Position numbers and translations under genes: made by a program. Shown here one piece after another: positions 14,022-61,366 of a DNA stretch of 64,000 nucleotides. Source of the stretch: Dimorphilus gyrociliatus (taxonomy: Eukaryota; Animalia; Annelida); the NCBI GenBank assembly GCA_904063045.1, contig CAJFCJ010000006.1, positions 2,098,946 through 2,162,945 on the forward strand, given 5' to 3'. The notes under the pieces were generated by a model. It had not been told where the DNA came from, made no database searches, and was given only the letters and a program-made list of their open reading frames with translations. The first letter of the stretch is position 1, and every line of letters begins with the position of its first letter.

Positions 14022-17000
14022 ATGGCAAATGTTACAGGCACACTAGCACATATATCTAACAACCTTTCGGCCATCGAACTGAGCATCGTAAGCAATTGTT
14101 TTGTTATTTACATGAAAAACTGACTTCAAAGCTATTGATTTCATGGTAAAAATCTAGATGTCCCCCTTTTTGGTCGCTAAATAGTTATTGATCTCAAAGA
14201 TTAGTTTATGTAAAAGCTGTTAAACGCATACTTTGAATATTTAACCTAACAGCAATTTTTCTAGAATACTAATTCAAGTATACTTCCTTACAGAATATTT
14301 TTGTCAGTATTGGAATTGGTGCATTTACATTATTTTTAATCACTTATTACTGCCTAAGTCGGAAAGTTAAGGTGCAAATTGTTCACGAAGGTTTACGTAT
14401 ACCCCGTCTCTCAGTGTCAACTCGTCCAACAAAACCTCGATTTCGCAAGAGGGATAAAGTTTTATTTTACGGGCGAAAGGTTCTACGAAAAGTGAAGAAC
14501 ACAGTAGCAGAGGAGCATCATAAACGTGCTAGAACCGTAATCAACAAGTTAGCCAAGCGACTCCTCAAGCCACATCAATCTAAAGAGCATGAAATTTTGA
14601 ATTTACAAAGGCCTCCGCCTTCATTTTTCGGTGATGATGACTTTAGTCAAGTGGGACCTAATTCCGATTCATCCGGAGTTCCTCCTGAGTTACTATATCT
14701 GCTACGATCTGTGAGAGTGTTGGGTCATTTCGAAAAACCTCTTTTCCTTGAATTATGTCGCCATGTAAAAACTATATCGCTTTTAGCATCCCAAAAAATA
14801 GAATATTTGCATCCTGATATATATATTGTGCAGAGTGGAAAATTAAGAATACTAATTACAGATACAGATGGCTGTGAGCATTCTGTCAAAGATACTGAAC
14901 CTGGTCAGAGTGTTCATAGTTTGTTGAGTCTTTTAGATGCATTACTGGGGCATACAGTGACAGCAAAGATAAATGTTAGCGCGGTTGCTATAACTGACAC
15001 GATTGTTTTCCATATTCCAGCTTCAGCTTTCGCTGATATACTTATGGGATTTCCTGAATCTCTAGTTAGAGTAGTTCAAGTGATGATGTTGAGATTACAA
15101 AGAGTAACTTATGGTGTATTGCATAATCAATTAGCTCTGACAGCCGAATTAACCCAAAACGATCAAGCAGTAAGTCACGATTTAGAAGAAGAAAGAAAGA
15201 AAAATAAAAAGATGTCCTTGAGGAGAACTTCTCATCCTCCTGAAGCCACACCTTCCGATTTTGAGGTAGCTATGGAGACAGCTCGTGTGGAAAGTATTCA
15301 AGGTCCAGCGTCACCAAGTAAAGTCAGGAGTAGAAGTCATCATCCGATTCATTCTCAAAGTATCACACCACAAACCGCAGAAATGCATATGGCAAGGGTG
15401 TTAGGAGTAGACGATGAAAACTTGCTAGCTGGTAGAGTTCACATAAGGAAGATTCAGCCTGGAGAAGAATTGCTCAGGCAAGGAGAAACAGATTGCTTTT
15501 TGGGGGTTGTGCTTGTTGGAACTCTTCACGTTCTTCAAAAAGAACCAGATTCAGGAAACGAAATACATATTCATTACTTAAGAACTGGTGAATTAATAGG
15601 CTCTCTCGCCGTGTTGACTGGTGAACCTTCCTTATTCACCATACGAAATAAGCTTCATACTGAAAATGAAGTACTCGTCGGAGTACTCTTGAAGGCTCAT
15701 TTTTATTCTATTATGCGTGAAAGACCAAAAGTTGTCTTACATTCTGCTCTAGCAGTGGCAAGAAGAATGTCATCTTTCGTCAGACATATAGATTTTGCTT
15801 TAGATTGGGATTGCATTGAATCGGGTCACAGATTATTCGCATCAGGAGATCCAGCTGACAGTATTTATTTAATACTGAGTGGACGTTTAAGAGGTGTTAC
15901 AGAAAAGAAACATGGTGAATCAGTTGTCTTAGGAGAGTATGGTAGAGGAGAAGTTGTTGGTGCTCTTGAGGTTCTAACCCATCATCCTAGGCAGTCCGGC
16001 CTGATGGCTGTAAGAGATACTGAAGTGGCCAGAGTACCCTCGGATTTGCTGACATATATTAAGAGGCGCTATCCTCTGGTGGTTTCAAGGCTTATTCACT
16101 TATTAGGACGCAAGATGTTTTCTTCCAATCCAACCTTTCCCTCCACTCTTCATCACCAACCGACGAATATAGCAACCGTTGCTGTGTTGCCTGCTGCTTC
16201 CAATGTACCCTTATCAAACTTTTGTCTTGAGCTCGAACATGCTCTGTCCGCAATTGGATCAACTTTGAGACTAACTTCCGAATGTATTCAAAATCGATTA
16301 GGGACCGCTGCCCTAGATCCTGTAAACTACTTGAGATTAGCTTCCTGGCTAGGTCAACAAGAAGACAATCACAAAATTGTCATTTATCAGTGCGATTCGA
16401 AAATGAGTGCATGGACTACACGCTGTATACGGCAAGCAGACGTAATATTAATTGTTGCTTTATACTCTTCAACACCCACTGTTGGCGATTTGGAGATGAA
16501 AGTTGACAATATGAGCGTCAGAGCTCATAAAGAATTAGTTCTGCTGCATGCCGAAGACTCGCCAGATTTGCCTAATAATACAGCAGCATGGCTTAATGCG
16601 CGTGGATGGTGTACAGCACATCATCACGTTCGCTGTCCTTCTAGAGTATTAAAAAACTATTCATCATCGAAATTAAATGCAATATATCGAAGACTTTTTG
16701 ATAAAAGTCCTGACAAGCTAAGTGACTGTTCCCGATTGGCTAGATTACTGACAGGAACTAGTGTCGGGTTAGTTTTAGGCGGAGGTGGTGCTAGAGGTTT
16801 AGCTCACGTTGGACTTCTTAAAGCCCTATGTGAAGCCGGTGTTCCCATTGACATGGTGGGTGGAACTAGTATTGGTGCTCTTATGGGAGCTCTTTGGTGT
16901 CTGCATACCGATGTCACAAAATTTACTCAAGCTGCAAGAGAATGGTCAAAATCTATGACATCTAAACCGAAATTACTGTATGACTTGACTTATCCTGCGA

Positions 17001-18102
17001 CTGCTTTAATGACAGGATCAGTTTTTAATACTGGTTTGTAGACGATATTATTTAAACGACTAAATTATACTTAGCTTTTTTCAGGTATTAAAAGCGTTAT
17101 ACCTGAAGATAAGTCCATAGAAGATCTTTGGATACCATATTTTACAATAACAACTGATGTTACTGCCTCTGTACAAAGGATGCACACTTCAGGTTCATTA
17201 TGGCGATATGTTAGGGCATCTATGTCTTTAGCTGGATATTTGCCTCCCTTGTGTGATCCAGTAGATGGACATCTATTATTAGATGGTGGATATGTGAATA
17301 ACGTACCTGCCGATGCAATGAAACAACTGGGTGCTGAAACTGTAATAGCAGTTGATGTAGGCTCGGAAGATAATAATGACTTGGCAAATTATGGTGACGA
17401 ATTATCTGGATGGTGGGCTCTTTGGCAAAGAATAAGGGGCAGCCGCTGTATTCTTAATATGGCTGAGCTGCAGTCTCGTTTAGCATACGTTTCTTGTGTT
17501 AGACAATTAGAGCAAGTAAAGAGTGGCAGTATGCCTGGTGTTCATTACGTGAGACCACCAATTAATAGGTAATTTAACAATTATTATGGTCATTTTTTTC
17601 AAATTCTTTAATAACTTTTAGATATTCTACCCTACAATTTGGTTCTTTTGATGAAATTTTCGATGTTGGCTACGCTCATGGAAAGGCGCTGTTTCACACC
17701 AGCCTCATAGATGAACTCTTCCGTAGAGAGTTTCAGCCGTTCTCTGCTGTATCTCAGAATACTATCTCGCCAAAAGAAGAAGACTTTATTGATCTGGCAG
17801 AACTGATATCTAAAATTGATGAACCTTATAGAGTACCGTCTACAGCAAGTCTTTTGAGTCTTGCTCCTTCTGAGAGTTGTTCGGAAGATGAATGTAGTTT
17901 GATAGCCGAAGAGGAGAGAAACTCTGAAACAGATACCGGTTTTCATGCTTCCGATCATGCTGACGAAAATGACGAACTTCGAACTCCTCCTGAAGGGGAT
18001 CCGAGTCCAGAAGAAATGACTACAGTAACTTCAATGACCGGCTCTTTAATATCGACATCTGATTCAACTATGCTACGACAAAGGCAGGTAGATGGTACAT
18101 AA
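14022..18102 (+). CDS. PNPLA6/7: Neuropathy target esterase / swiss cheese (patatin-like phospholipase with three cNMP-binding domains)
   Basis: Exons 14022-14087, 14294-17033, 17085-~17568, ~17621-18102. N-terminal TM helix, [16 protein letters not shown], three CNB domains, GGGARG, GTSIG nucleophile, DGGY catalytic Asp. Confidence 0.96.
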
Positions 18103-29554: not shown

Positions 29555-30340
29555 CTACCTGTTAGAATTAGGTTTTTCGTCTCCAGATGCAGAGTCTGAC
29601 CTAAGAATAAAAAAAAAAACAACTTTACTCTTTCAATTCGTCAGGTACTGTATATTTATGAATAATCAGAATATTCTTGTAAAATTGAGACCTAGAACTA
29701 GGGTGACTAATGACAATTATTGAAAAAAATAAAATGTAAATGAAAACTGCAGCAATTTCTTCTTCATTTTCTCAGTATCAAGGTGACAACACGGACTTAC
29801 TTTTCATTTTCCTCAGAACCGAATATTCGTAGTCGAGCTTCCTTATATTCTTGCTCTCGCTGTTCAACACTCTTCCATGTTGATGGTGTTTTTTGAGTCA
29901 AATTTGTTTCATTCTTCGGTCGTTCCTCGGGAGATCTTCTTAATATTCTTACTTGAGGTGTATATTGGGTTCTGTCTGTATCTTCTCTTAATATTCTATT
30001 GATAATATAATTTTTAATTATAGACTCTTCATTATAAGAAAAATGAAAAAAAATACATACGTTGGTTTTGTGGATTCTTTCCTAGCTTTAATATTAACAG
30101 AAGTGAAATTTGGCTTTGTATTATTCAATTTATTCTGTAATTCCTGTTTGAATCGGATGAATCGGTAAGATAGGAGGAAAAAATGCAATTAATCACATAC
30201 AAATTTACAAAAGTATTCTTTTATTTAATAGAAAAATATTATATAAATCAATAGAAACGTTAATATGATAAGAAAAAAATTAAACTAACGTCATTTACGT
30301 CTAAATCTTCCCAACTTTCGACTTCATGATTTTCCGCCAT
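29555..30340 (-). CDS. SZRD1: SUZ-domain protein, SZRD1-like
   Basis: Four exons: MAENHEVESWEDLD|...|PQVRILRR...KSVEQREQEYKEARLRIFGS (SUZ motif)|SDSASGDEKPNSNR*. Confidence 0.75.
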
Positions 30341-30800
30341 ATTGCTCAGCTTTGCTCGAACTTCAAGATAGTATACTTCAGTACATTATATTTTATTGAC
30401 GTAATAAACCTATTGCAATCTGAATATAAAATTTACAATCGAATCAACAAAATTTTTTAGAAATATTTATACTGAACATTTATGCAAAACTTGAAAGTGT
30501 AGTTTAATTATAAGTTTATTACATTCATAAATTGCTTCTACACTAAAATCAATATCAATCTTTAATGTGACATTGTCAAGTTATAGACGTTTCTTTCGAA
30601 TTTTCCTACGAATTTTCCTTCAACTATCAACAATTCTGCTAAAATAGGATTACTTGCCTCCTGATTTCAGTATCTTGTACATAGTATTCTCTCACTTATG
30701 AATTAGTCATGTGACCATAAATTTTTTTTTTATTCCGTATAGCCTCATTTATAGGTAAAAAGGTGGAGGGAACAGGTAACCGGACTAATAGAAATTGGTT

Positions 30801-31945
30801 ATGGCGTCTGAATTGAGTGACGGAGCGACAGAAACTAACATGTCTGAACTAACTGACGAAACTTTGGGTCGTGATAATCCGGCTTTTGCTGGAGCAACCC
30901 TCCAAATTGAAGATCCCGAAAAGACCAGTGATGATCCAGTCCCAGATGTTGAATTTAAAGGTACAAACTTTGAAAGAAATATACCAAGCCGAATGAGCAC
31001 CATATCAACAACGTCCAGTCGATCTAGTCGAACATCTATGAAGAGTGTAAAATATCCTGAGCATACAAAGAAAGATTATTTTTGCAAACGAGATGGAACT
31101 TTCGAGAAGGCCCAAGAACATTGTCTAACTGCCGTTGTCAACCCTCAAATCGATGGAAAGTTTATATCAAGTTGGTTGCTAACTGAAATTGATCACTGGG
31201 ACAACGAATCTGAACGAATTGTACTCTTATGCGAAGAGTCTATTTTAATCACCCGATATGATTTTGTTAAATTGGAAGCGTTAGGTAAATTTTTTACAAC
31301 CCTTTATAGGATTTACATAAAAATAGATATTCGAATAAATTATTATTCAGCACATGAAGTTGAATCACCAACATAAGTTTTTTTTTTAATCCTAACTTCA
31401 GTGCTTGTTTAAGCTACTTGTCGAAATTTAATGATTTTCTTTTCAAACTATAGACGCTAAACGTATTATGTTGGCTCATATCAAAAAAATTCAAGTCGGT
31501 GACCTCACTTATCCTCCAAGTAGTTGGATGCCAGCAAGAAATCATGGTGGTGTACGAATAATCTGGAATGAGAACGCGCAACCTTCATTCGCCCAAAGAT
31601 GGAATCCGTTTTGTAAAACTATTCCCTACGTAACATTAATTCATCATCCACTAATATACCACGATAAAGAAGAAGAGACTCTCTACTATAATGTTGATGA
31701 ATTTTTTGAAAGTCTCATAGACGCCGCTAATAAAAGTTTCAAGGTAAATAAAACACTTATTGAATGGTTAACATGAATATAAATAAACCCTTTTTAAATA
31801 ATTAAAATAGGGACAAAATAGCGGATCGTTTGTTCAAGTTGAAGAATCTCCAATAATGATTGAATGCTATACTGGATTAACATCAGTAATCTTTAATCAA
31901 AGTCATTTGGGATTCTCAAGAGAGCGTGGAGGAGTAAGCTTCTAA
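30801..31945 (+). CDS. TPRG1L: Tumor protein p63-regulated gene 1-like protein (hSac2 domain)
   Basis: WLLTEIDHWDNESERIVLL, RWNPFCKTIPYVTLIHHP, C-terminal GLTSVIFNQSHLGFSRERGGVSF; three exons. Confidence 0.88.
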
Positions 31946-32009
31946 GTTTCTTCGTTGTAAAATAATGATATAATTTATACAGTATATACATATATCTGCA
32001 TGTATGTTA

Positions 32010-32068
32010 ATACTATTACTATTACTATTACTATTACTACTAATACTACTACTTCTACTACAACTACT
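32010..32068. repeat. (TTACTA)n/(CTA)n microsatellite
   Basis: Direct reading; it explains the poly-Leu ORF 32004..32213. Confidence 0.9.
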
Positions 32069-50541: not shown

Positions 50542-51824
50542 AGCAAAGAGATAGACAGAACAAACTTATTATCAACCACTCTTTTCTTATCAGAATCGAT
50601 ATTACTAGAGTCGGACCTACAAAATAAAATTATAATTGGGTTTTCTTTTATGTTTATAAAGTATTCTTCTTTCAATTAAAGATTTTCTTTGCGTCATATA
50701 GAATTCTACTATTTGCTCTAGTCGCAATGCGAAGAATATATAATTTTTCTTCTATTTTTTTGGAATAACTCTACTATTTAAATAGTAATAGCTTAGTATT
50801 CTTCTCTTTCTCCTCCTTTCTCTTTCTCATCCTTTATGTTTTTACGAATTAACTGCCTTGCCTCTTCTCTTCGATATGCTTCTTAGGCCACCATGAATTT
50901 TATTTTCTATTTTTCCTCCCTTTATTCCTTTATATAAAGAGAGCTTAGAAGAGATAACAATTCTTATATTTGATTTGATATTTTATTTGAAATGCGCATG
51001 CGTTAAATGAGCCCAATTGTGAAATTATGGCAGGTGGTCGACCGGTCCCTTCTTTGATATTTTTACGCACGTATAGACATATGTATACACTTAGATACAA
51101 TTCATAAAATCATAATAAGACATGGAATTTTTATACGGATATTTAGCTTCTACAGTTGCAAGTAATATTTTCCACTTATCGCTCATTTATCACCTTACAG
51201 AACTTGTGGAAGGACGTGGAAAATTTGCTATATGAACAAAACCCAGCTATAACAGCTAATCCTACACCACCAATTAGTCCTCAACCAGATTTAGATCTCG
51301 ATTTTCTTCTCAACTTTTCAATGGAACCTGAAAGGAACTCGACCTCAAGTTCAACAACCGATTTACCTGATTTTGGTTCGGCTTTCGTCGATATACCCGA
51401 TATAAAGGAAGAGTTTCCTCACGTTCCGCCCCCGTATCCCGTTTTTTATCCTAACCAGGAATATTATTACCCGATACCTCCAATGAATAGTATGGTCACA
51501 CCACCTTCTTCGCCCGAAGAACCCAAGAAACGAGGTCGAAGGAGTTGGGGGAGAAAACGTCAAACTACGCACTCTTGCACTTATTCTGGGTGTACTAAAA
51601 CCTATACGAAATCATCGCATCTCAAAGCGCATCTTCGGACACACACAGGAGAAAAACCTTATCATTGCACTTGGAAAGGTTGCGGCTGGAAGTTCGCCAG
51701 GTCAGATGAACTTACAAGGCACTTCCGTAAACATACAGGAGATAGACCGTTTGCATGCCACCTATGCGACAGAGCTTTCTCTAGGAGTGATCATCTGTCA
51801 TTGCATATGAAGAGGCACATGTAA
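46974..51824 (+). CDS. KLF2/4: Kruppel-like factor of the KLF1/2/4 subfamily, ~258 aa
   Basis: [10 protein letters not shown] followed by three KLF fingers ([55 protein letters not shown]); VTPPSSP and PPPY motifs. Exons 51201-51824 and 50195-50332 are in phase 0; the first coding exon 46974-46988 (MHMDL|GTGAGC) is inferred. Confidence 0.93.
49359..50160. promoter_or_regulatory. Three perfect MEF2 sites in KLF intron 1
   Basis: CTAAAAATAG 49359-49368, CTATTTTTAG 49448-49457, CTATTTTTAG 50151-50160. Confidence 0.6.
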
Positions 51825-54335: not shown

Positions 54336-57300
54336 ATGAGAAGGAAATTTGACTGCATGGATCGGCGAAAGTCGAAATTAGCCGATCCGGACCGCTTGTG
54401 GAAGTTGGAAAATGCAGAAATTGAGGAGAATGCCCTTTACAAATATCTCAATAATCAAAATGGTGGTAAATTAATTGATTGTTATTCCGAAGGCGGAGAG
54501 GAAGCCATAGAAAAAATGATCTCTTCCGAAATTGAACCTTTCCTCTACAATGGAGGAAAAGGTAAAATTTTAACGAAATTGGAATTTGTCCAGTGGAGGA
54601 ATAGGTGTTCCGCAAAGAGACAAGGGCAAACTCTCATAGATACACGATCTGAGGAGGAAGTTTTGAACGAATTTCAAGATTCTTTTGAAACACATCTGGC
54701 CTGTTGGGATATAAACAAAAGAGGTGTTCTCGGAGAGACAGCCCTACATATATGCTGTCTTCACGACACGCCAATTCACTTTGAACTAGCTAAAATATTG
54801 GTTAGACTTTATCCAAAAATGGTTCTAGATGTATACGAAGGCAAGGAATACTATGGACAAAGCGCTCTACACTTGGCTGTCGTATCTGGGAATCTTGATA
54901 TGGTAAAGTTATTGGTTGAAAATGGTGCTATGATAAACCAACGCGCTTCCGGTCCGTTCTTCCTTCCGGAGGACGTTAAGCGTCAAAAGAAGACGATCTC
55001 CACTTCGAATTACGCAGGATACGCTTATTTCGGGGAATACGCTCTAGCGTTTGCAGCCTGCTTCGGCAGGGAAGATATCTACGATTATCTTGCAGAAAAG
55101 GGGGCCGATCCAAATTTGAAGGATACTCTTGGCAATTGCGTTCTTCATATGCTTGTCATCAGTAATCAACTTGTAAGTCCTTACTGATACTTTCTCATAC
55201 TTGGATAAACCTCGCAGTTTATCCGAAATAACCTTAATCATTTCGATACGGCTAGCACGATATTCTTTTAATCTAGCTCATCTATTCCGTTAAGAGTTCC
55301 CCGCTTCGGCGGAAAAAAATAATAAATCGAAGTAAATATCGACTGTTTGCGGCGTTACTAAAGTAACGCCTGTAAACAAGTAAAAGCTTTCATAGGCCTA
55401 ACATTTTGATGAAATGAATTGAATGATCGTTTTTAAATACTTGACTATTTTGTTTTGTTTTGTTTCTGTTTAATGAAAGGTTTTGTTCGTGTTTCACAGG
55501 GTATGTATAGTTATGCTGTAAGACATCCGAAAAAGAAGGCGCGCGTCGAAATATCGAATGAAGCAAATTTGACGCCGTTAACACTTGCATCGAAGTTGGG
55601 TCGAAATGAAATTTTTAAGGAGATTATCGAATTGCAGAGCGTCGTAAGTATTGAACGTTAAACGCCGTTAATTGGATCAGAATGTCAATATTTGCCAAAT
55701 CTGATACGTAGAATGGGTCTTTGTAATTTATTGCGTTTATATTTATCAATATCATGTCGTTTTTTAAAGCGTCTCTTTCCTGTTTACAGGAAATTTGGAG
55801 ATATAGTAATATCACCTGCTCCACTTATCCGTTAGCTACTTTAGATACTATAGGGCAGGAAGGGAAGACGAGTGAGTAAACGAAATGATTTAAAGTAAAA
55901 TTGCTATCAAAAGCTTGACTGAATATATAAATAATCAATTTAGACTGGAGTTCGGCCCTAATGTACATAACTGATGGTGAGACTGAAGAACATTTAGAAA
56001 TGCTAGAGGGAGGCGTTATTAAGCAGCTTCTAGATGAAAAGTGGAAGACGTATGCAAGGCGGAGATTTTTCGAGCGTCTGGTGCTAGCTGTCCTACATCT
56101 GATCTGCCTAAGCGTCGCCATTTATACTCGTCCTGGTACCGATCTACTAGGTCCAATCGATAAGATAAACATTGTAAGTCATTTAGCTGGGAAGCATGAG
56201 TGTTTCCACTATCGTCACTTATCCCTCTTTTTCCTCTCTTATTTCTTTTGTCGATTATTGTAAGCGTTAAACAACTTGTATACATATTTCTCAATGCTCC
56301 ACGTGCAGTATCTTATCTTTGTTGTTATTGATACTGTAAACTTCCTTCCTAGCTCCGATAAATTTATTCGCTCATAGTGACCCTCTAATATAACTCAAAA
56401 CTAGAGAATTACTAGACAAAAGATAAAAGATAAAGATATCGATCAAGACGTTCGTTTAATTTACTTATAACCCCCGCTATTTTTTCCAGGTTCGTTATAT
56501 AGCTGAGATTATATCTACTCTAAACTGTTTCATTAACCTGGCCATGTACTACGATGAAGTGAAATCGCAAGGGATTGTTGAGTTCTTTAAAAATCAAACG
56601 TCGGCCCCAGCCAAAATGATATTTAATATATCATGTGCTCTAATCCTCTCTTGTGTACCCATGAGATTCCTAAGGCTGGAAGGAGTAGAAGTGGTTTTGT
56701 TGGCCATAGCGGCACCGTGTGCCTGGGTCCATCTACTCTTTTTTGCTAGGTAAGTTAATTATGATGGTCAATTTAAACGCCTCTATACTGTTTCCCTCTA
56801 TCATTCTATTACTAAATATATATATATTACATATCTTTTACCTCTAAACTATGCCTTGATCGTTCAATGTTGTACAATAAAATAAGAGAATACGTTTTAA
56901 TTTTTTACAGGGGAGTGTCCCTACTTGGTCCATTCGTCATTATGATTTATAAAATGTGCGCGTCTGATATGGTGCGATTTATATTCATCTTCGGTGTCTT
57001 CCTCATCCAATTCTCCCAAGGTGATTAAAATCTCTCTTAATCAATGTTTTTAAATTTTATTGATTTATTCTTATTATTTTTCTTTCTCTAAACGCATTTA
57101 TTAATTAGTTTTCGTTATAATTTCATCACAAAATCAATAGAGAAAAGTCACTTAAATGTAATTTCAATTTTTAACCTTTAAAAACTAATTAATAATTTAA
57201 TTATAGGATTATAAATGTTGCGTGTTTACTTGTGTTTGTTTATGCATATTTATTGCATTTGTAGTAAGTATGCAAATTAGAATATCTTATATATTACTTA

Positions 57301-57817
57301 AAAGTAATGACATTCTAACATTTAAATTGTTTTTCTCTTGTGTTGAAACCCAAGCTCTATTTCTAAAGATTATCAATAATTATATTAAACTACTTTTATC
57401 ATATGTAATTTTTAGCTGTAAAACTTAATTATTTAGCTTATAATTAACTATGTTAACGCTAATTATCATATATGTTTATACTAACAATGGTTTCGAATAT
57501 AAGAAATGCTTTATTAGCAATTGTTTAATATCATATGATTACTTTTTTGTTATGTATAATGTATAATTTTATCCAATAAGATAGTTCAATCATTTAAAAG
57601 AAAAATTTAAAATATTTAACAAAAGAGAAAATAGGATATAATTATTAAATAGTTCTCTTTTTTTCATTATAGTTGTTCTAGTTCTAGTGGGATAACATTA
57701 TAGAATTTATATGTTTTGCTTTGGTTAATTAATGGTTGAATGAGTTTTACAAGTGATTATAATTAATCAATGTTTTCTCTTAGGTTAAACTTGCCTATCT
57801 AGTGTTTTTTTATCTGA

Positions 57818-57853
<36 letters not shown>

Positions 57854-58814
57854 ATCTATCCATCTCTCACTCTTCATCTCCTTTACCTCACCCGCTCCTC
57901 CTCCTCCTCCGAATATTTTTCGCCCCTCCCATTCTTCATTTTTCTTCCTTTTAGAGTCTATCAACCAACTGGGCCTTGCGTTACGATGTTCTATAAAATG
58001 TTTTTTGGAGATATTAGAAAATTCGCTAGTATTTATATCATTTTCCTTCTCGGATTTACTCCAGGTGCACTTATTTTACTTATTTATATACCTATGACAT
58101 TTTTAATTCTCTTGTGTCTTTTGTTTCTCTTTTTTTTTTAAAAAAAAGAGAATTAAATGAAAATGTCCATCGCATTTCTTTTTGCACATATTTAATTATT
58201 TAATAGTTTTAGATTTAGTATTTATTTTTTGTTTTATGCTAGGTCTTTACTAAACTGATTAAATATCGATTACCTACATTTTTTATGATTCTAAGTAATT
58301 GACTTCCCTAGGTTTCTTCTTCCTTTTTAAGGATATTGAAGATCCAAATATTACAACCTTTAAAACGATTTTTGGTACATTAATGCAGTTGTTCCAAATG
58401 ACTTTGGGTGAATTCAAGGTCAGTTTTATTTTCTTATCATTATTCTGTTTAGTTTTTTTTTCTCTCGGCAGTAAAAGTTTATCAATTTTTCATTCGAACT
58501 TTTAAAAAAAAGAAGAAAAAACAGCAAGAAAATTAAATAAATAATAAAAAAAAAACACTAAAAGAAAACAGTTAATAGAAAGAGGAAACAATGAAAAATT
58601 GTTAAATAGCCGTCACCTAACACATTTTTGATAGGTGTCGCTTTTTACCAAACCGTGTATTTCCATTAACAATTTACTTTTGTTTATTTTTTGTAAATAT
58701 TATTTTTAATAAGTTCTTTACAGCGTAAATAAAAAAATTGTTAGAATTGGAAATTCAAGTGTTTGGGTGTTGAATTAAATGAAAAAAAAGTAACTGTTTA
58801 TATGTTATATACTG

Positions 58815-58864
<50 letters not shown>

Positions 58865-59950
58865 ATGTACAAATATACACCCACATTCATACATATATCA
58901 ATGTATTTAATTCTTTTTATAATAACTTAAAAAATGTCGTGAAAAACTAAAAGATGTTAAAAGAATCTTTACAAGTTCGATTAAAACGACAAAACATTCA
59001 TTTCGAACATAAAAATTTTTCAATATGTTTATTTATTTATTTTTCTACCCGTTTTTTTTTTGCCTTTAATTTTTTTTATCCCTTTTGTTTCTTCGAGAAA
59101 AAAAATCAAAAGAAATGTAAGAACAATAATCTCCCTTCCTTTAGAAAAACTTTAGGCCTAGATTATTAAACAGACTTCACAATTAATGATCGAAGATCAA
59201 TCAACGCACCCAAACACTTAAATTTGCCAATACTGCTATTATATACCGACTACCAATCGATATAATTTAGTAACTAATTATCTTAGTTGCCAGTCACGTG
59301 ATTTTTAAATTTGCATATTCGAGCAGACTTCGAAAGGAGAATTAATTAAGGTGACGCCAGAAAGACTTTTTAAGTTGTTTTTGTTGCTACTTTTTGTCTT
59401 GTTTTTATTTTTTATCATTTCCCTTTGTTATTTATACTATTTTTTTATTGTTTAGTTTTTTATATGCTATATATACTGTATCATTTTCCAATATTTCGAA
59501 ACAAACTATCACACACAACTCTTTAATTATTCTGCTTTGGTCTATAAACACAATCTAGGCCTATGTAAATAATAAGGAAGGAGTTTCTGGCCATTTTTAA
59601 TTAATAGATATTAGAAAAAGAAAACAAATAGGATAGGATAGATAGGCAGATAGATAGAATTTTTTGAATGTTAATCTATTCATAACTATTCTCAACTGTT
59701 AAAGAGCATTACTAATTTGTAATTAGATAATAAATACCCGTATTTATATATAAATATATATATTTTTGTTTTTCCAATATTTATGAATCGGGGGGAGACT
59801 CGTTCAATTATTTTAATTTAATATTTGTAGGACAGCCATTAGAAGTTTCTAGCAACACGTTTCTTTACAAACATTATCTCTCTTTTTATGGATATATGTA
59901 AAGTCATTAGTCGCTGTTTACAATAATTTACAAGTATTGTATAAAAAGGA

Positions 59951-60019
<69 letters not shown>

Positions 60020-61366
60020 GAGAGAAGGAGATAAAGAGAAATAAATAAAGAATGTTATTGAAAAAACTGTTAGATCTAGCTATTGGACCATTTTTAGTCC
60101 AATGTAATCAAGAAATCGATAATTTTCTGTGTAAAGAGAATTATTCAATTTCTTTTTTTGTCTTGAGGAGTTTTCTTTAGTATTTTTTTCATTCCTTCTC
60201 TATTTTTAGGAGAAGGAAGATAAAGCAGTTTTTTTTGACAGAGAGATACGAATTTTTTCTTCCAATTTCATCAATAATTTTTTATTATTTTTTTCCTCTT
60301 CTTCGGCAAAAATTTTGTGGAGTTTGATCTATTTTTTGCACAGAACAAACAAACAAACAAACAAACAAGCAAACAAACAAAACATACAATGAAAATGCCA
60401 AAAAAAAAATAACTAAAGATAAAAAAGAGATAATAAAACTTTATCAGTTTTTATGTCTTCTTAATTATGTGACATAAAATAATTAGAAATCTCTAATTGG
60501 TTCATATTCGCTCTTTACTATTCATAAAATAATTAACTTTATTATTATAATTATTAATGATAAGTTTGTTTATAAAAAAAATACAGTATGAAGATTTTGA
60601 TGCGACCCGAATGCCAATTCTAACAAAGATTGTGTTTGCTGTGTTCGCCATCTTGGTTCCAATTCTTCTACTTAACATGCTTATTGCTATGATGGGTAAT
60701 ACGTATCAGATGATCATTAGTAGATCTGAGAAGGAATGGACAAGGCAATGGGCAAAGATAATGATTGTTATTGAGAGAACATTTGATGCAAAAAGACTAA
60801 TGAAATACCAAGAAGAGTACTCAGTTGCTTTTCAGGCTGGAGGAGAGAATGCCAGAGGTTTGATGGTAATAAAAGCATCAAATAAAACTAAGGCTAGGCA
60901 ACGGAAAGGAGCAATAGCGAACTGGAAGAAAATGGTCTATATGGTCAAAAAACTGCTGAAGGAGGCTAAGCAAACGGGCAATCCCCCTGCTTTCGCTCTG
61001 TCAAGGAAAAAGTCCACATTGAACAAGATTATGTTAGAAGAACCACCTGCATTGGATATGGATAACTCTGGTTTATTGGGAGCTATGGCCCAGCTGGCGT
61101 GGGAAAAAGACATAGATCTAGCTCCAATATCAGGAGGTGAAAGTGATTCCAAAAAAAGAAAACAATCGACATCGGGTTCCGACTGTCCAACATCAATTGC
61201 CCAACAACTCTTGAATGATGAGGAATTGAAAAATCCTCACCCTCGACCACCATCTGGTAAGTCGTTGGCCAAGAGGTCTTCCAAAGTGACGCCCGAAAAC
61301 TCGGTTAGCCCGTCACCTGATTCCGGCGTCTCTAAGTCATCAAAACGTAGTGCAAGGACGTTTTGA
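54336..61366 (+). CDS. iav/osm-9: TRPV channel, Inactive/OSM-9 subfamily
   Basis: Ankyrin repeats ([31 protein letters not shown]), [18 protein letters not shown], pore FQMTLGEF, S6/TRP box [27 protein letters not shown], and [24 protein letters not shown] typical of Iav. Confidence 0.95.
56911..57020 (+). CDS. iav/osm-9: TRPV S4-S5 linker/S5 exon, variant A (110 nt)
   Basis: ttttttacag|G...CAAG|gtgatt; encodes (R)[36 protein letters not shown](G). Confidence 0.9.
57955..58064 (+). CDS. iav/osm-9: TRPV S4-S5 linker/S5 exon, variant B (110 nt)
   Basis: ttccttttag|A...CCAG|gtgcac; encodes (R)[36 protein letters not shown](G); same length and phases as A. Confidence 0.82.
59953..60019. repeat. 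(GA)n microsatellite, the longest of many GA/CT tracts in the window
   Basis: Direct reading; similar tracts near 24033, 37340, 41880, 44290, 47648, 50495, 52758, 57822 and 63975. Confidence 0.95.

Follow-up and report, generated by a model that had tools for sequence, protein, structure and literature searches.

The 64,000-nucleotide (nt) stretch of the genome of the tiny marine annelid Dimorphilus gyrociliatus analysed here (contig CAJFCJ010000006.1; hereafter the window, to which all positions refer unless another sequence is named) carries a TRPV channel gene in which two adjacent homologous exons, A and B, encode alternative versions of the same membrane segment. The gene was modelled by tblastn with its Littorina ortholog (P0003) as query, combined with an exhaustive search of splice sites and reading frames, and comprises eight coding exons (Table 1). 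Its product has an N-terminal ankyrin domain of the TRPV type and a six-transmembrane (S1-S6) ion-transport domain with S6 and the TRP helix (EKEW...QWA), and the subunit is 43-57% identical to Inactive (Iav)-type representatives. The assignment to the Iav type comes from exon-by-exon best matches in PDB. The ankyrin exon scored 212.9 bits against Inactive, its best match, versus 179.6 against Nanchung (Nan) and 96 against TRPV6; the S2-S4 exon scored 36.6 bits against Inactive versus 17.7 against Nanchung, and the last exon 128.8 versus 57. Since Inactive outscored Nanchung for every constant exon tested, these matches point to an Inactive/OSM-9-type TRPV subunit, in agreement with an original prediction that had been made from the DNA letters alone.

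The alternative exons A and B

Both exons are 110 nt long, share their phase and are bounded by AG/GT sites: exon A lies between ...ttttttacAG and GTgatt, exon B between ...ccttttAG and GTgcac. The AG at the 3' end of the preceding constant exon supplies the first two bases of an arginine codon, while exon 7 begins GT TTC TTC TTC..., read as (G)FFFLFKD. A and B are each open in one frame only, namely the frame that continues ...LLFFA(R). When the gene was spliced in silico with either exon alone, the frame stayed open to the normal stop at 61366 and gave a protein of 851 amino acids (aa). Joining A to B, on the other hand, led to a stop in exon 7, the order B-A to a stop inside A, and the omission of both to a stop six codons past FFAR, such that joint inclusion and joint skipping are both non-productive. 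Because 110 nt is not a multiple of three, the frame is kept only with exactly one copy, so the two copies act as mutually exclusive exons; at the protein level, this exclusivity follows from exon length.

The two versions are highly diverged. Of their 36 residues, 13 are identical between A and B (15/38 when the split boundary codons are counted), and so are, in register, 53 of the 110 bases; the resulting isoforms differ at 23 of the 36 residues of the linker and S5. Both align to one and the same stretch of solved TRPV channels (Nan 677-711, Iav 515-549, TRPV1 560-592), so that the encoded segment runs from the end of S4 through the S4-S5 linker and takes in most of S5. The original prediction had described two stop-free 110-nt exons with the same phases, GT-AG sites and 13/36 identical residues, and was correct in every checkable detail; its statements that A or B alone is in frame while both or neither shift the frame, and that the pair lies in the S4-S5 linker and S5, likewise held when examined by in silico splicing and by alignment to the solved Nan, Iav and TRPV1 channels.

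Conservation of the pair and constraint on exon B

A family profile was built from the 36 matching residues of 47 representative homologs and used for a six-frame scan of the 64-kb window. Exon A scored 59.0 bits and exon B 50.9 bits, the next best score in the window being 7.5 bits, so exon B is far beyond chance on this profile. Set against the canonical orthologs of this exon in molluscs and in Lingula, B (17-20 of 36 residues identical) is as similar as A (19-21). Besides, exon B has a G+C content of 34.5%, versus 21-24% in the introns on either side. The near saturation of A and B in DNA points to an old duplication, and free drift for that long in a context of 30% G+C would have erased the frame, the splice sites and the family pattern; exon B is thus under constraint, not decayed. 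The claim that both exons are under selection is accordingly strengthened by the profile score of B, its intact open reading frame and AG/GT sites, its exon-like G+C content and the conserved pairs described below. Neither an exact 35-mer of exon B nor a degenerate back-translation of its core had a match in the JGI metagenomes.

When the genomic loci of the representatives were scanned with the same profile, tandem pairs were found in five other genomes, with both copies exactly 110 nt long and flanked by AG/GT everywhere (Table 1). One of these is the annelid Owenia fusiformis; the search of other annelids for the duplicated exon, which the original prediction had proposed, returned a pair in Owenia and a single copy in Helobdella. 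In addition, RefSeq holds isoforms of the same length that differ in this segment alone for Lingula, Mytilus trossulus, a second Mytilus, Mya arenaria, Pecten maximus and a second scallop. For instance, the Lingula isoforms X1 and X2 are identical at 124 of 141 residues around the segment, and every difference falls within it. These lophotrochozoan Iav-type pairs match the Dimorphilus pair in the orthologous gene, the same exon, its length of 110 nt and phase, the tandem layout and the equal length of the isoforms. They differ in that both forms are modelled there, whereas in Dimorphilus and Owenia the first copy alone is annotated or seen in RNA, and in that the divergent copy comes first in molluscs and Lingula, whereas the two Dimorphilus copies depart from the canonical sequence to about the same extent. 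Judged by these pairs, the arrangement is old and common to three phyla, as it occurs in annelids, in molluscs and, with Lingula, in a brachiopod.

In molluscs and Lingula, copy 1 is divergent (12-17/36 residues identical to anything else) and copy 2 canonical (23-29/36 among themselves). Dimorphilus A is identical to the annotated first exon of Owenia at 22 of 36 residues, and B to the second Owenia exon at 16 of 36, with a common Y/F-Q-x-T-G start and a terminal proline. Two maximum-likelihood trees of the exon copies, each based on 36 columns, conflict with one another on A, B and the Owenia copies: in the first, A joins the first exon of Owenia (93/94) and the first copies of molluscs group together, while the second unites the two copies of Owenia and sets A, weakly (89/57), beside Nanchung-like sequences. 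The pairs might stem from one ancestral duplication, from duplication combined with gene conversion, or from repeated duplication.

Two further observations were made at these loci. Owenia (L009:30131-32049) has three tandem homologous S1 exons (30131-30247, 30747-30866 and 31906-32049). Its products CAH1784043.1 and CAH1784044.1 differ only in the use of the first versus the second of them; the third is unannotated and, of the three, comes closest to the one S1 that Dimorphilus has. Where ...FFAR is conserved upstream of the S4-S5 exon, the Batillaria attramentaria model KAK7475681.1 (L003:10134-10241) reads EDVLLMGWS; this model is probably mis-spliced or incomplete, and one exon copy was found in the locus.

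Transcripts and the choice between the exons

The transcript data consisted of assembled contigs of four sequencing runs, placed on positions 55900-58450. In run X3, from the same organism, every sampled word of the ankyrin exon was present, as were 22% of those from the genomic stretch, and the run search also matched marine metatranscriptomes with near-identical sequence. An X3 contig of 2437 nt (word depth 158) joins 56173>56490, 56749>56911 and 57020>58312 and then runs into the last exon. Two of these junctions, 56749>56911 and 57020>58312, recur in a 243-nt contig from run X1. Exon A is thus the main or default form in bulk RNA. Of the two expected mRNAs, the A form alone was seen (X3, X1), which is a weak test, as it involves contigs only: a choice between A and B forms an equal-length bubble, of which assemblers keep the deeper path, so that contigs can drop the minor variant. 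For exon B, we infer its use in D. gyrociliatus.

From constant exon 7, a loose end continues into 60581 (TATGAAGATTTTGAT...), and the X3 transcript contig ends 28 nt into the last exon. The break near 58418/60581 could mean that the assembly graph branches close to where the S6 exon starts, at a variant or repeat. Besides, X3 contigs of depth 105-144 lie on two short stretches of the A-B intron (57534-57705) and then continue into unrelated sequence, where the loose ends lie at 57559 and 57664; the pattern suggests a dispersed repeat, or a segment that other loci have as well, and not a retained intron.

Taken together, we consider it likely that A and B form a tandem, mutually exclusive pair of old standing, in which A is the default and B would be a regulated minor form, included in few cells or conditions. 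The long (CT)/(CCT) tract that had been predicted before B is real: it contains (CT)14 at 57821-57848 and CCT repeats near 57893-57910, and with 85% pyrimidine the 150 nt before B represent the maximum of the window, as none of the other sliding 150-nt windows on the + strand reached this value (0/6385). CU-rich sequence of this kind is a target of polypyrimidine-tract-binding repressors, and silence of exon B in most cells would be in line with this; a repressor of this type, bound to the 150-nt tract, may hold B off. Among other ways of enforcing the choice, steric exclusion between A and B does not apply, as the 934-nt intron is too long; both exons have GT-AG sites; and the inverted repeats within 56700-58360 were discarded as evidence of selector pairing, being A/T-rich and of low complexity, with 70-88% complementarity.

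Several observations weigh against this interpretation. Exon B occurs in no contig of the four runs, and the X3 contig passes through A unbroken. (CT)n microsatellites are common, with 16 CT/AG tracts in the 64 kb, and the tract before B may be partly incidental. An inverted-repeat scan of 56700-58360 gave no convincing docking or selector RNA pairing. Biomphalaria, Batillaria and Helobdella have a single copy, which makes the second copy dispensable in some lineages. For Owenia, Littorina and Dimorphilus alike, the public gene model lacks one copy; copy 2 of Owenia and copy 1 of Littorina are intact and yet missing from the models. Finally, the two trees, built on 36 residues, disagree on the orthology of the copies between phyla, and recurrent duplication or gene conversion could lie behind the pairs.

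Some of these points would also fit an exon B that was functional in an ancestor and now persists in Dimorphilus as an unused relic, with the A form alone in use and decay still pending. The transcript contigs carry A alone, the genome of this miniaturised worm is compact and no longer has the separate cluster of S1 exons seen in Owenia, and one copy was lost in other lophotrochozoans as well. Yet, with A and B near saturation in DNA, B still has its open frame, both splice sites and an exon-like composition, and it reaches 50.9 bits on the family profile. Moreover, one would expect a compact genome to shed sequence that is not used, and the absence of B from contigs that drop minor equal-length variants is weak evidence. 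We therefore regard a relic as unlikely, although it is the strongest of the alternatives, and favour a pair in which B is still used.

According to the original prediction, A looked Nan/OCR-like and B Iav-like, raising the idea of a single locus as the source of both subunits of the heteromer. A stretch of 10 residues in A is indeed common to some Nanchung-like representatives, and one of the two trees places A beside Nanchung-like sequences with weak support (89/57); the other puts it with the Iav exon of Owenia (93/94), and trees of 36 residues are unstable. A is identical to Nanchung-like representatives at 21 of 36 residues, the same figure as against canonical Iav exons. In the bit scores, both exons do slightly better on Nanchung, and B more so than A (A 23.3 bits versus 21.2 on Inactive; B 27.6 versus 21.0). 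Besides, the remaining protein is of the Iav type, including the ankyrin domain and the C-terminus, which define the Nan-Iav interfaces (PMC12808645). A division of labour between a Nanchung-like A and an Inactive-like B is hence very improbable. That B is an assembly artefact, a collapsed paralogue or haplotype inserted in the intron, can be dismissed almost with certainty, for with only 48% identity in DNA A and B cannot be two haplotypes, five independently assembled genomes of other species show the same tandem layout, exon length and phases, and nothing was found in its favour.

Elsewhere in the window, an open reading frame that ends in three KLF/Sp-type C2H2 zinc fingers (51147-51821) lies on the same strand, ∼2.5 kb 5' of the TRPV start. 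A neuropathy-target-esterase/PNPLA6-7 gene occupies 14273-18099; its exon 14273-17038 is 100% identical to DgyrCDS4682, and a protein from a Logan contig (P0377) is 90% identical, so public runs include DNA or RNA from a close relative.

Table 1. Features of the Dimorphilus TRPV gene, and exon pairs of the same kind in other lophotrochozoans (positions within the sequence named in the second column).
Feature	Sequence	Position	Strand	Remarks
Whole TRPV gene	window	54336..61366	+	Inactive-type; 851 aa with either alternative exon
Coding exon 1	window	54336-55172	+	ankyrin repeats (Pfam Ank_2/Ank)
Coding exon 2	window	55500-55643	+	
Coding exon 3	window	55790-55871	+	
Coding exon 4	window	55944-56173	+	S1 fused in; S1 without duplicate here
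Constant exon S2-S4	window	56490-56749	+	ends ...TTT TTT GCT AG, then gtaagt; ...LLFFA + AG
Exon A	window	56911-57020	+	(R)...36 residues...(G); S4-S5 linker and S5; form seen in RNA
A-B intron	window	57021-57954	+	934 nt, 24% G+C
Pyrimidine tract	window	57805-57954	+	directly 5' of exon B; 85% pyrimidine over 150 nt
Exon B	window	57955-58064	+	(R)...36 residues...(G); alternative S4-S5 linker and S5; intact; without RNA contig
Constant exon 7	window	58312-58418	+	107 nt; S5 end to pore helix; junction 57020>58312
Last exon	window	60581-61366	+	Pfam Ion_trans match; end of ion-transport domain
Lingula anatina, copy 1	L006	15750-15859		
Lingula anatina, copy 2	L006	16599-16708		
Littorina saxatilis, copy 1	L002	28275-28384		
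Littorina saxatilis, copy 2	L002	30404-30513		
Scallop, copy 1	L007	45569-45678		
Scallop, copy 2	L007	47240-47349		
Mytilus edulis, copy 1	L008	33815-33924		
Mytilus edulis, copy 2	L008	37002-37111		
Owenia fusiformis, copy 1	L009	34007-34116		annelid
Owenia fusiformis, copy 2	L009	37452-37561		annelid
Lingula anatina, isoform pair	XP_013388391.1/XP_013388393.1			RefSeq
Mytilus trossulus, isoform pair	XP_063430505.1/XP_063430515.1			RefSeq
Mya arenaria, isoform pair	XP_052781744.1/XP_052781748.1			RefSeq
Pecten maximus, isoform pair	XP_033744456.1/XP_033744457.1			RefSeq

Functional implications and relation to known systems

In solved structures of the family, the segment encoded by A or B transmits movement of S1-S4 to the pore and makes a domain-swapped packing contact with the adjacent subunit. 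Exchanging it would most likely alter the coupling between S1-S4 and the pore as well as the packing on the neighbour, be this a Nanchung-type subunit or the channel subunit itself, rather than ligand binding; altered gating or partner packing would thus be the likeliest effect of the swap. The original prediction had also suggested a change in nicotinamide sensitivity through a pocket in the membrane. This suggestion has lost ground, given that in the Nan-Iav structure nicotinamide and afidopyropen bind the ankyrin domain of Nan at the cytoplasmic Nan-Iav interface, not a membrane pocket (PMC12808645).

The swapping of membrane modules by exclusive exons is not a new principle. Mutually exclusive exons are known from the insect NaV gene para (c/d and k/l), vertebrate NaV (5N/5A), CaV1.2 (8/8a) and the BK/slo cassettes. 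As with A and B, tandem exons of equal length swap a transmembrane or linker module of a six-transmembrane subunit there and tune its gating. These channels differ from the present case in belonging to another branch of the superfamily and in that their tissue or stage use and functional effects have been measured, whereas A is known from sequence and contigs and B from sequence. Closer by family are insect TRP genes whose exons have likewise been described as mutually exclusive, namely the second and third exons of Bactrocera TRPL (PMC6137742) and, as alternative first exons, Pieris Pyrexia and TRPM (PMC7143563). However, the exon choice there concerns N-terminal residues or start codons instead of a transmembrane gating module, and none of these genes is a TRPV. 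A search of the full-text literature on mutually exclusive exons in TRPV, Nanchung or Inactive returned only such N-terminal alternative exons of other TRP genes. The assertion that no TRPV with this arrangement has been described therefore stands for the searchable papers and fails for public annotation, where the RefSeq isoform pairs are already listed. The arrangement is real and conserved and apparently undescribed in papers, while being present, without comment, in automatic annotation.

Two natural versions of one gating module in an otherwise identical subunit amount to a ready-made chimera for the study of TRPV gating, and the pair should also be useful for studying the assembly of heteromers with Nanchung-type partners. 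If the two forms are cell-specific, A and B could serve as a marker for subtypes of annelid and molluscan sensory cells. More tentatively, the ancient S4-S5/S5 exon pair in an Iav-type gene, together with the three tandem S1 exons of Owenia, hints that lophotrochozoan TRPVs might be built from swappable membrane modules, such that one heteromeric sensory channel could come in many gating and pore combinations across sensory cells. This is possible, though we would not yet call it probable; if true, it would represent a system for diversifying mechano- and chemosensory TRP channels without counterpart in ecdysozoans and vertebrates.

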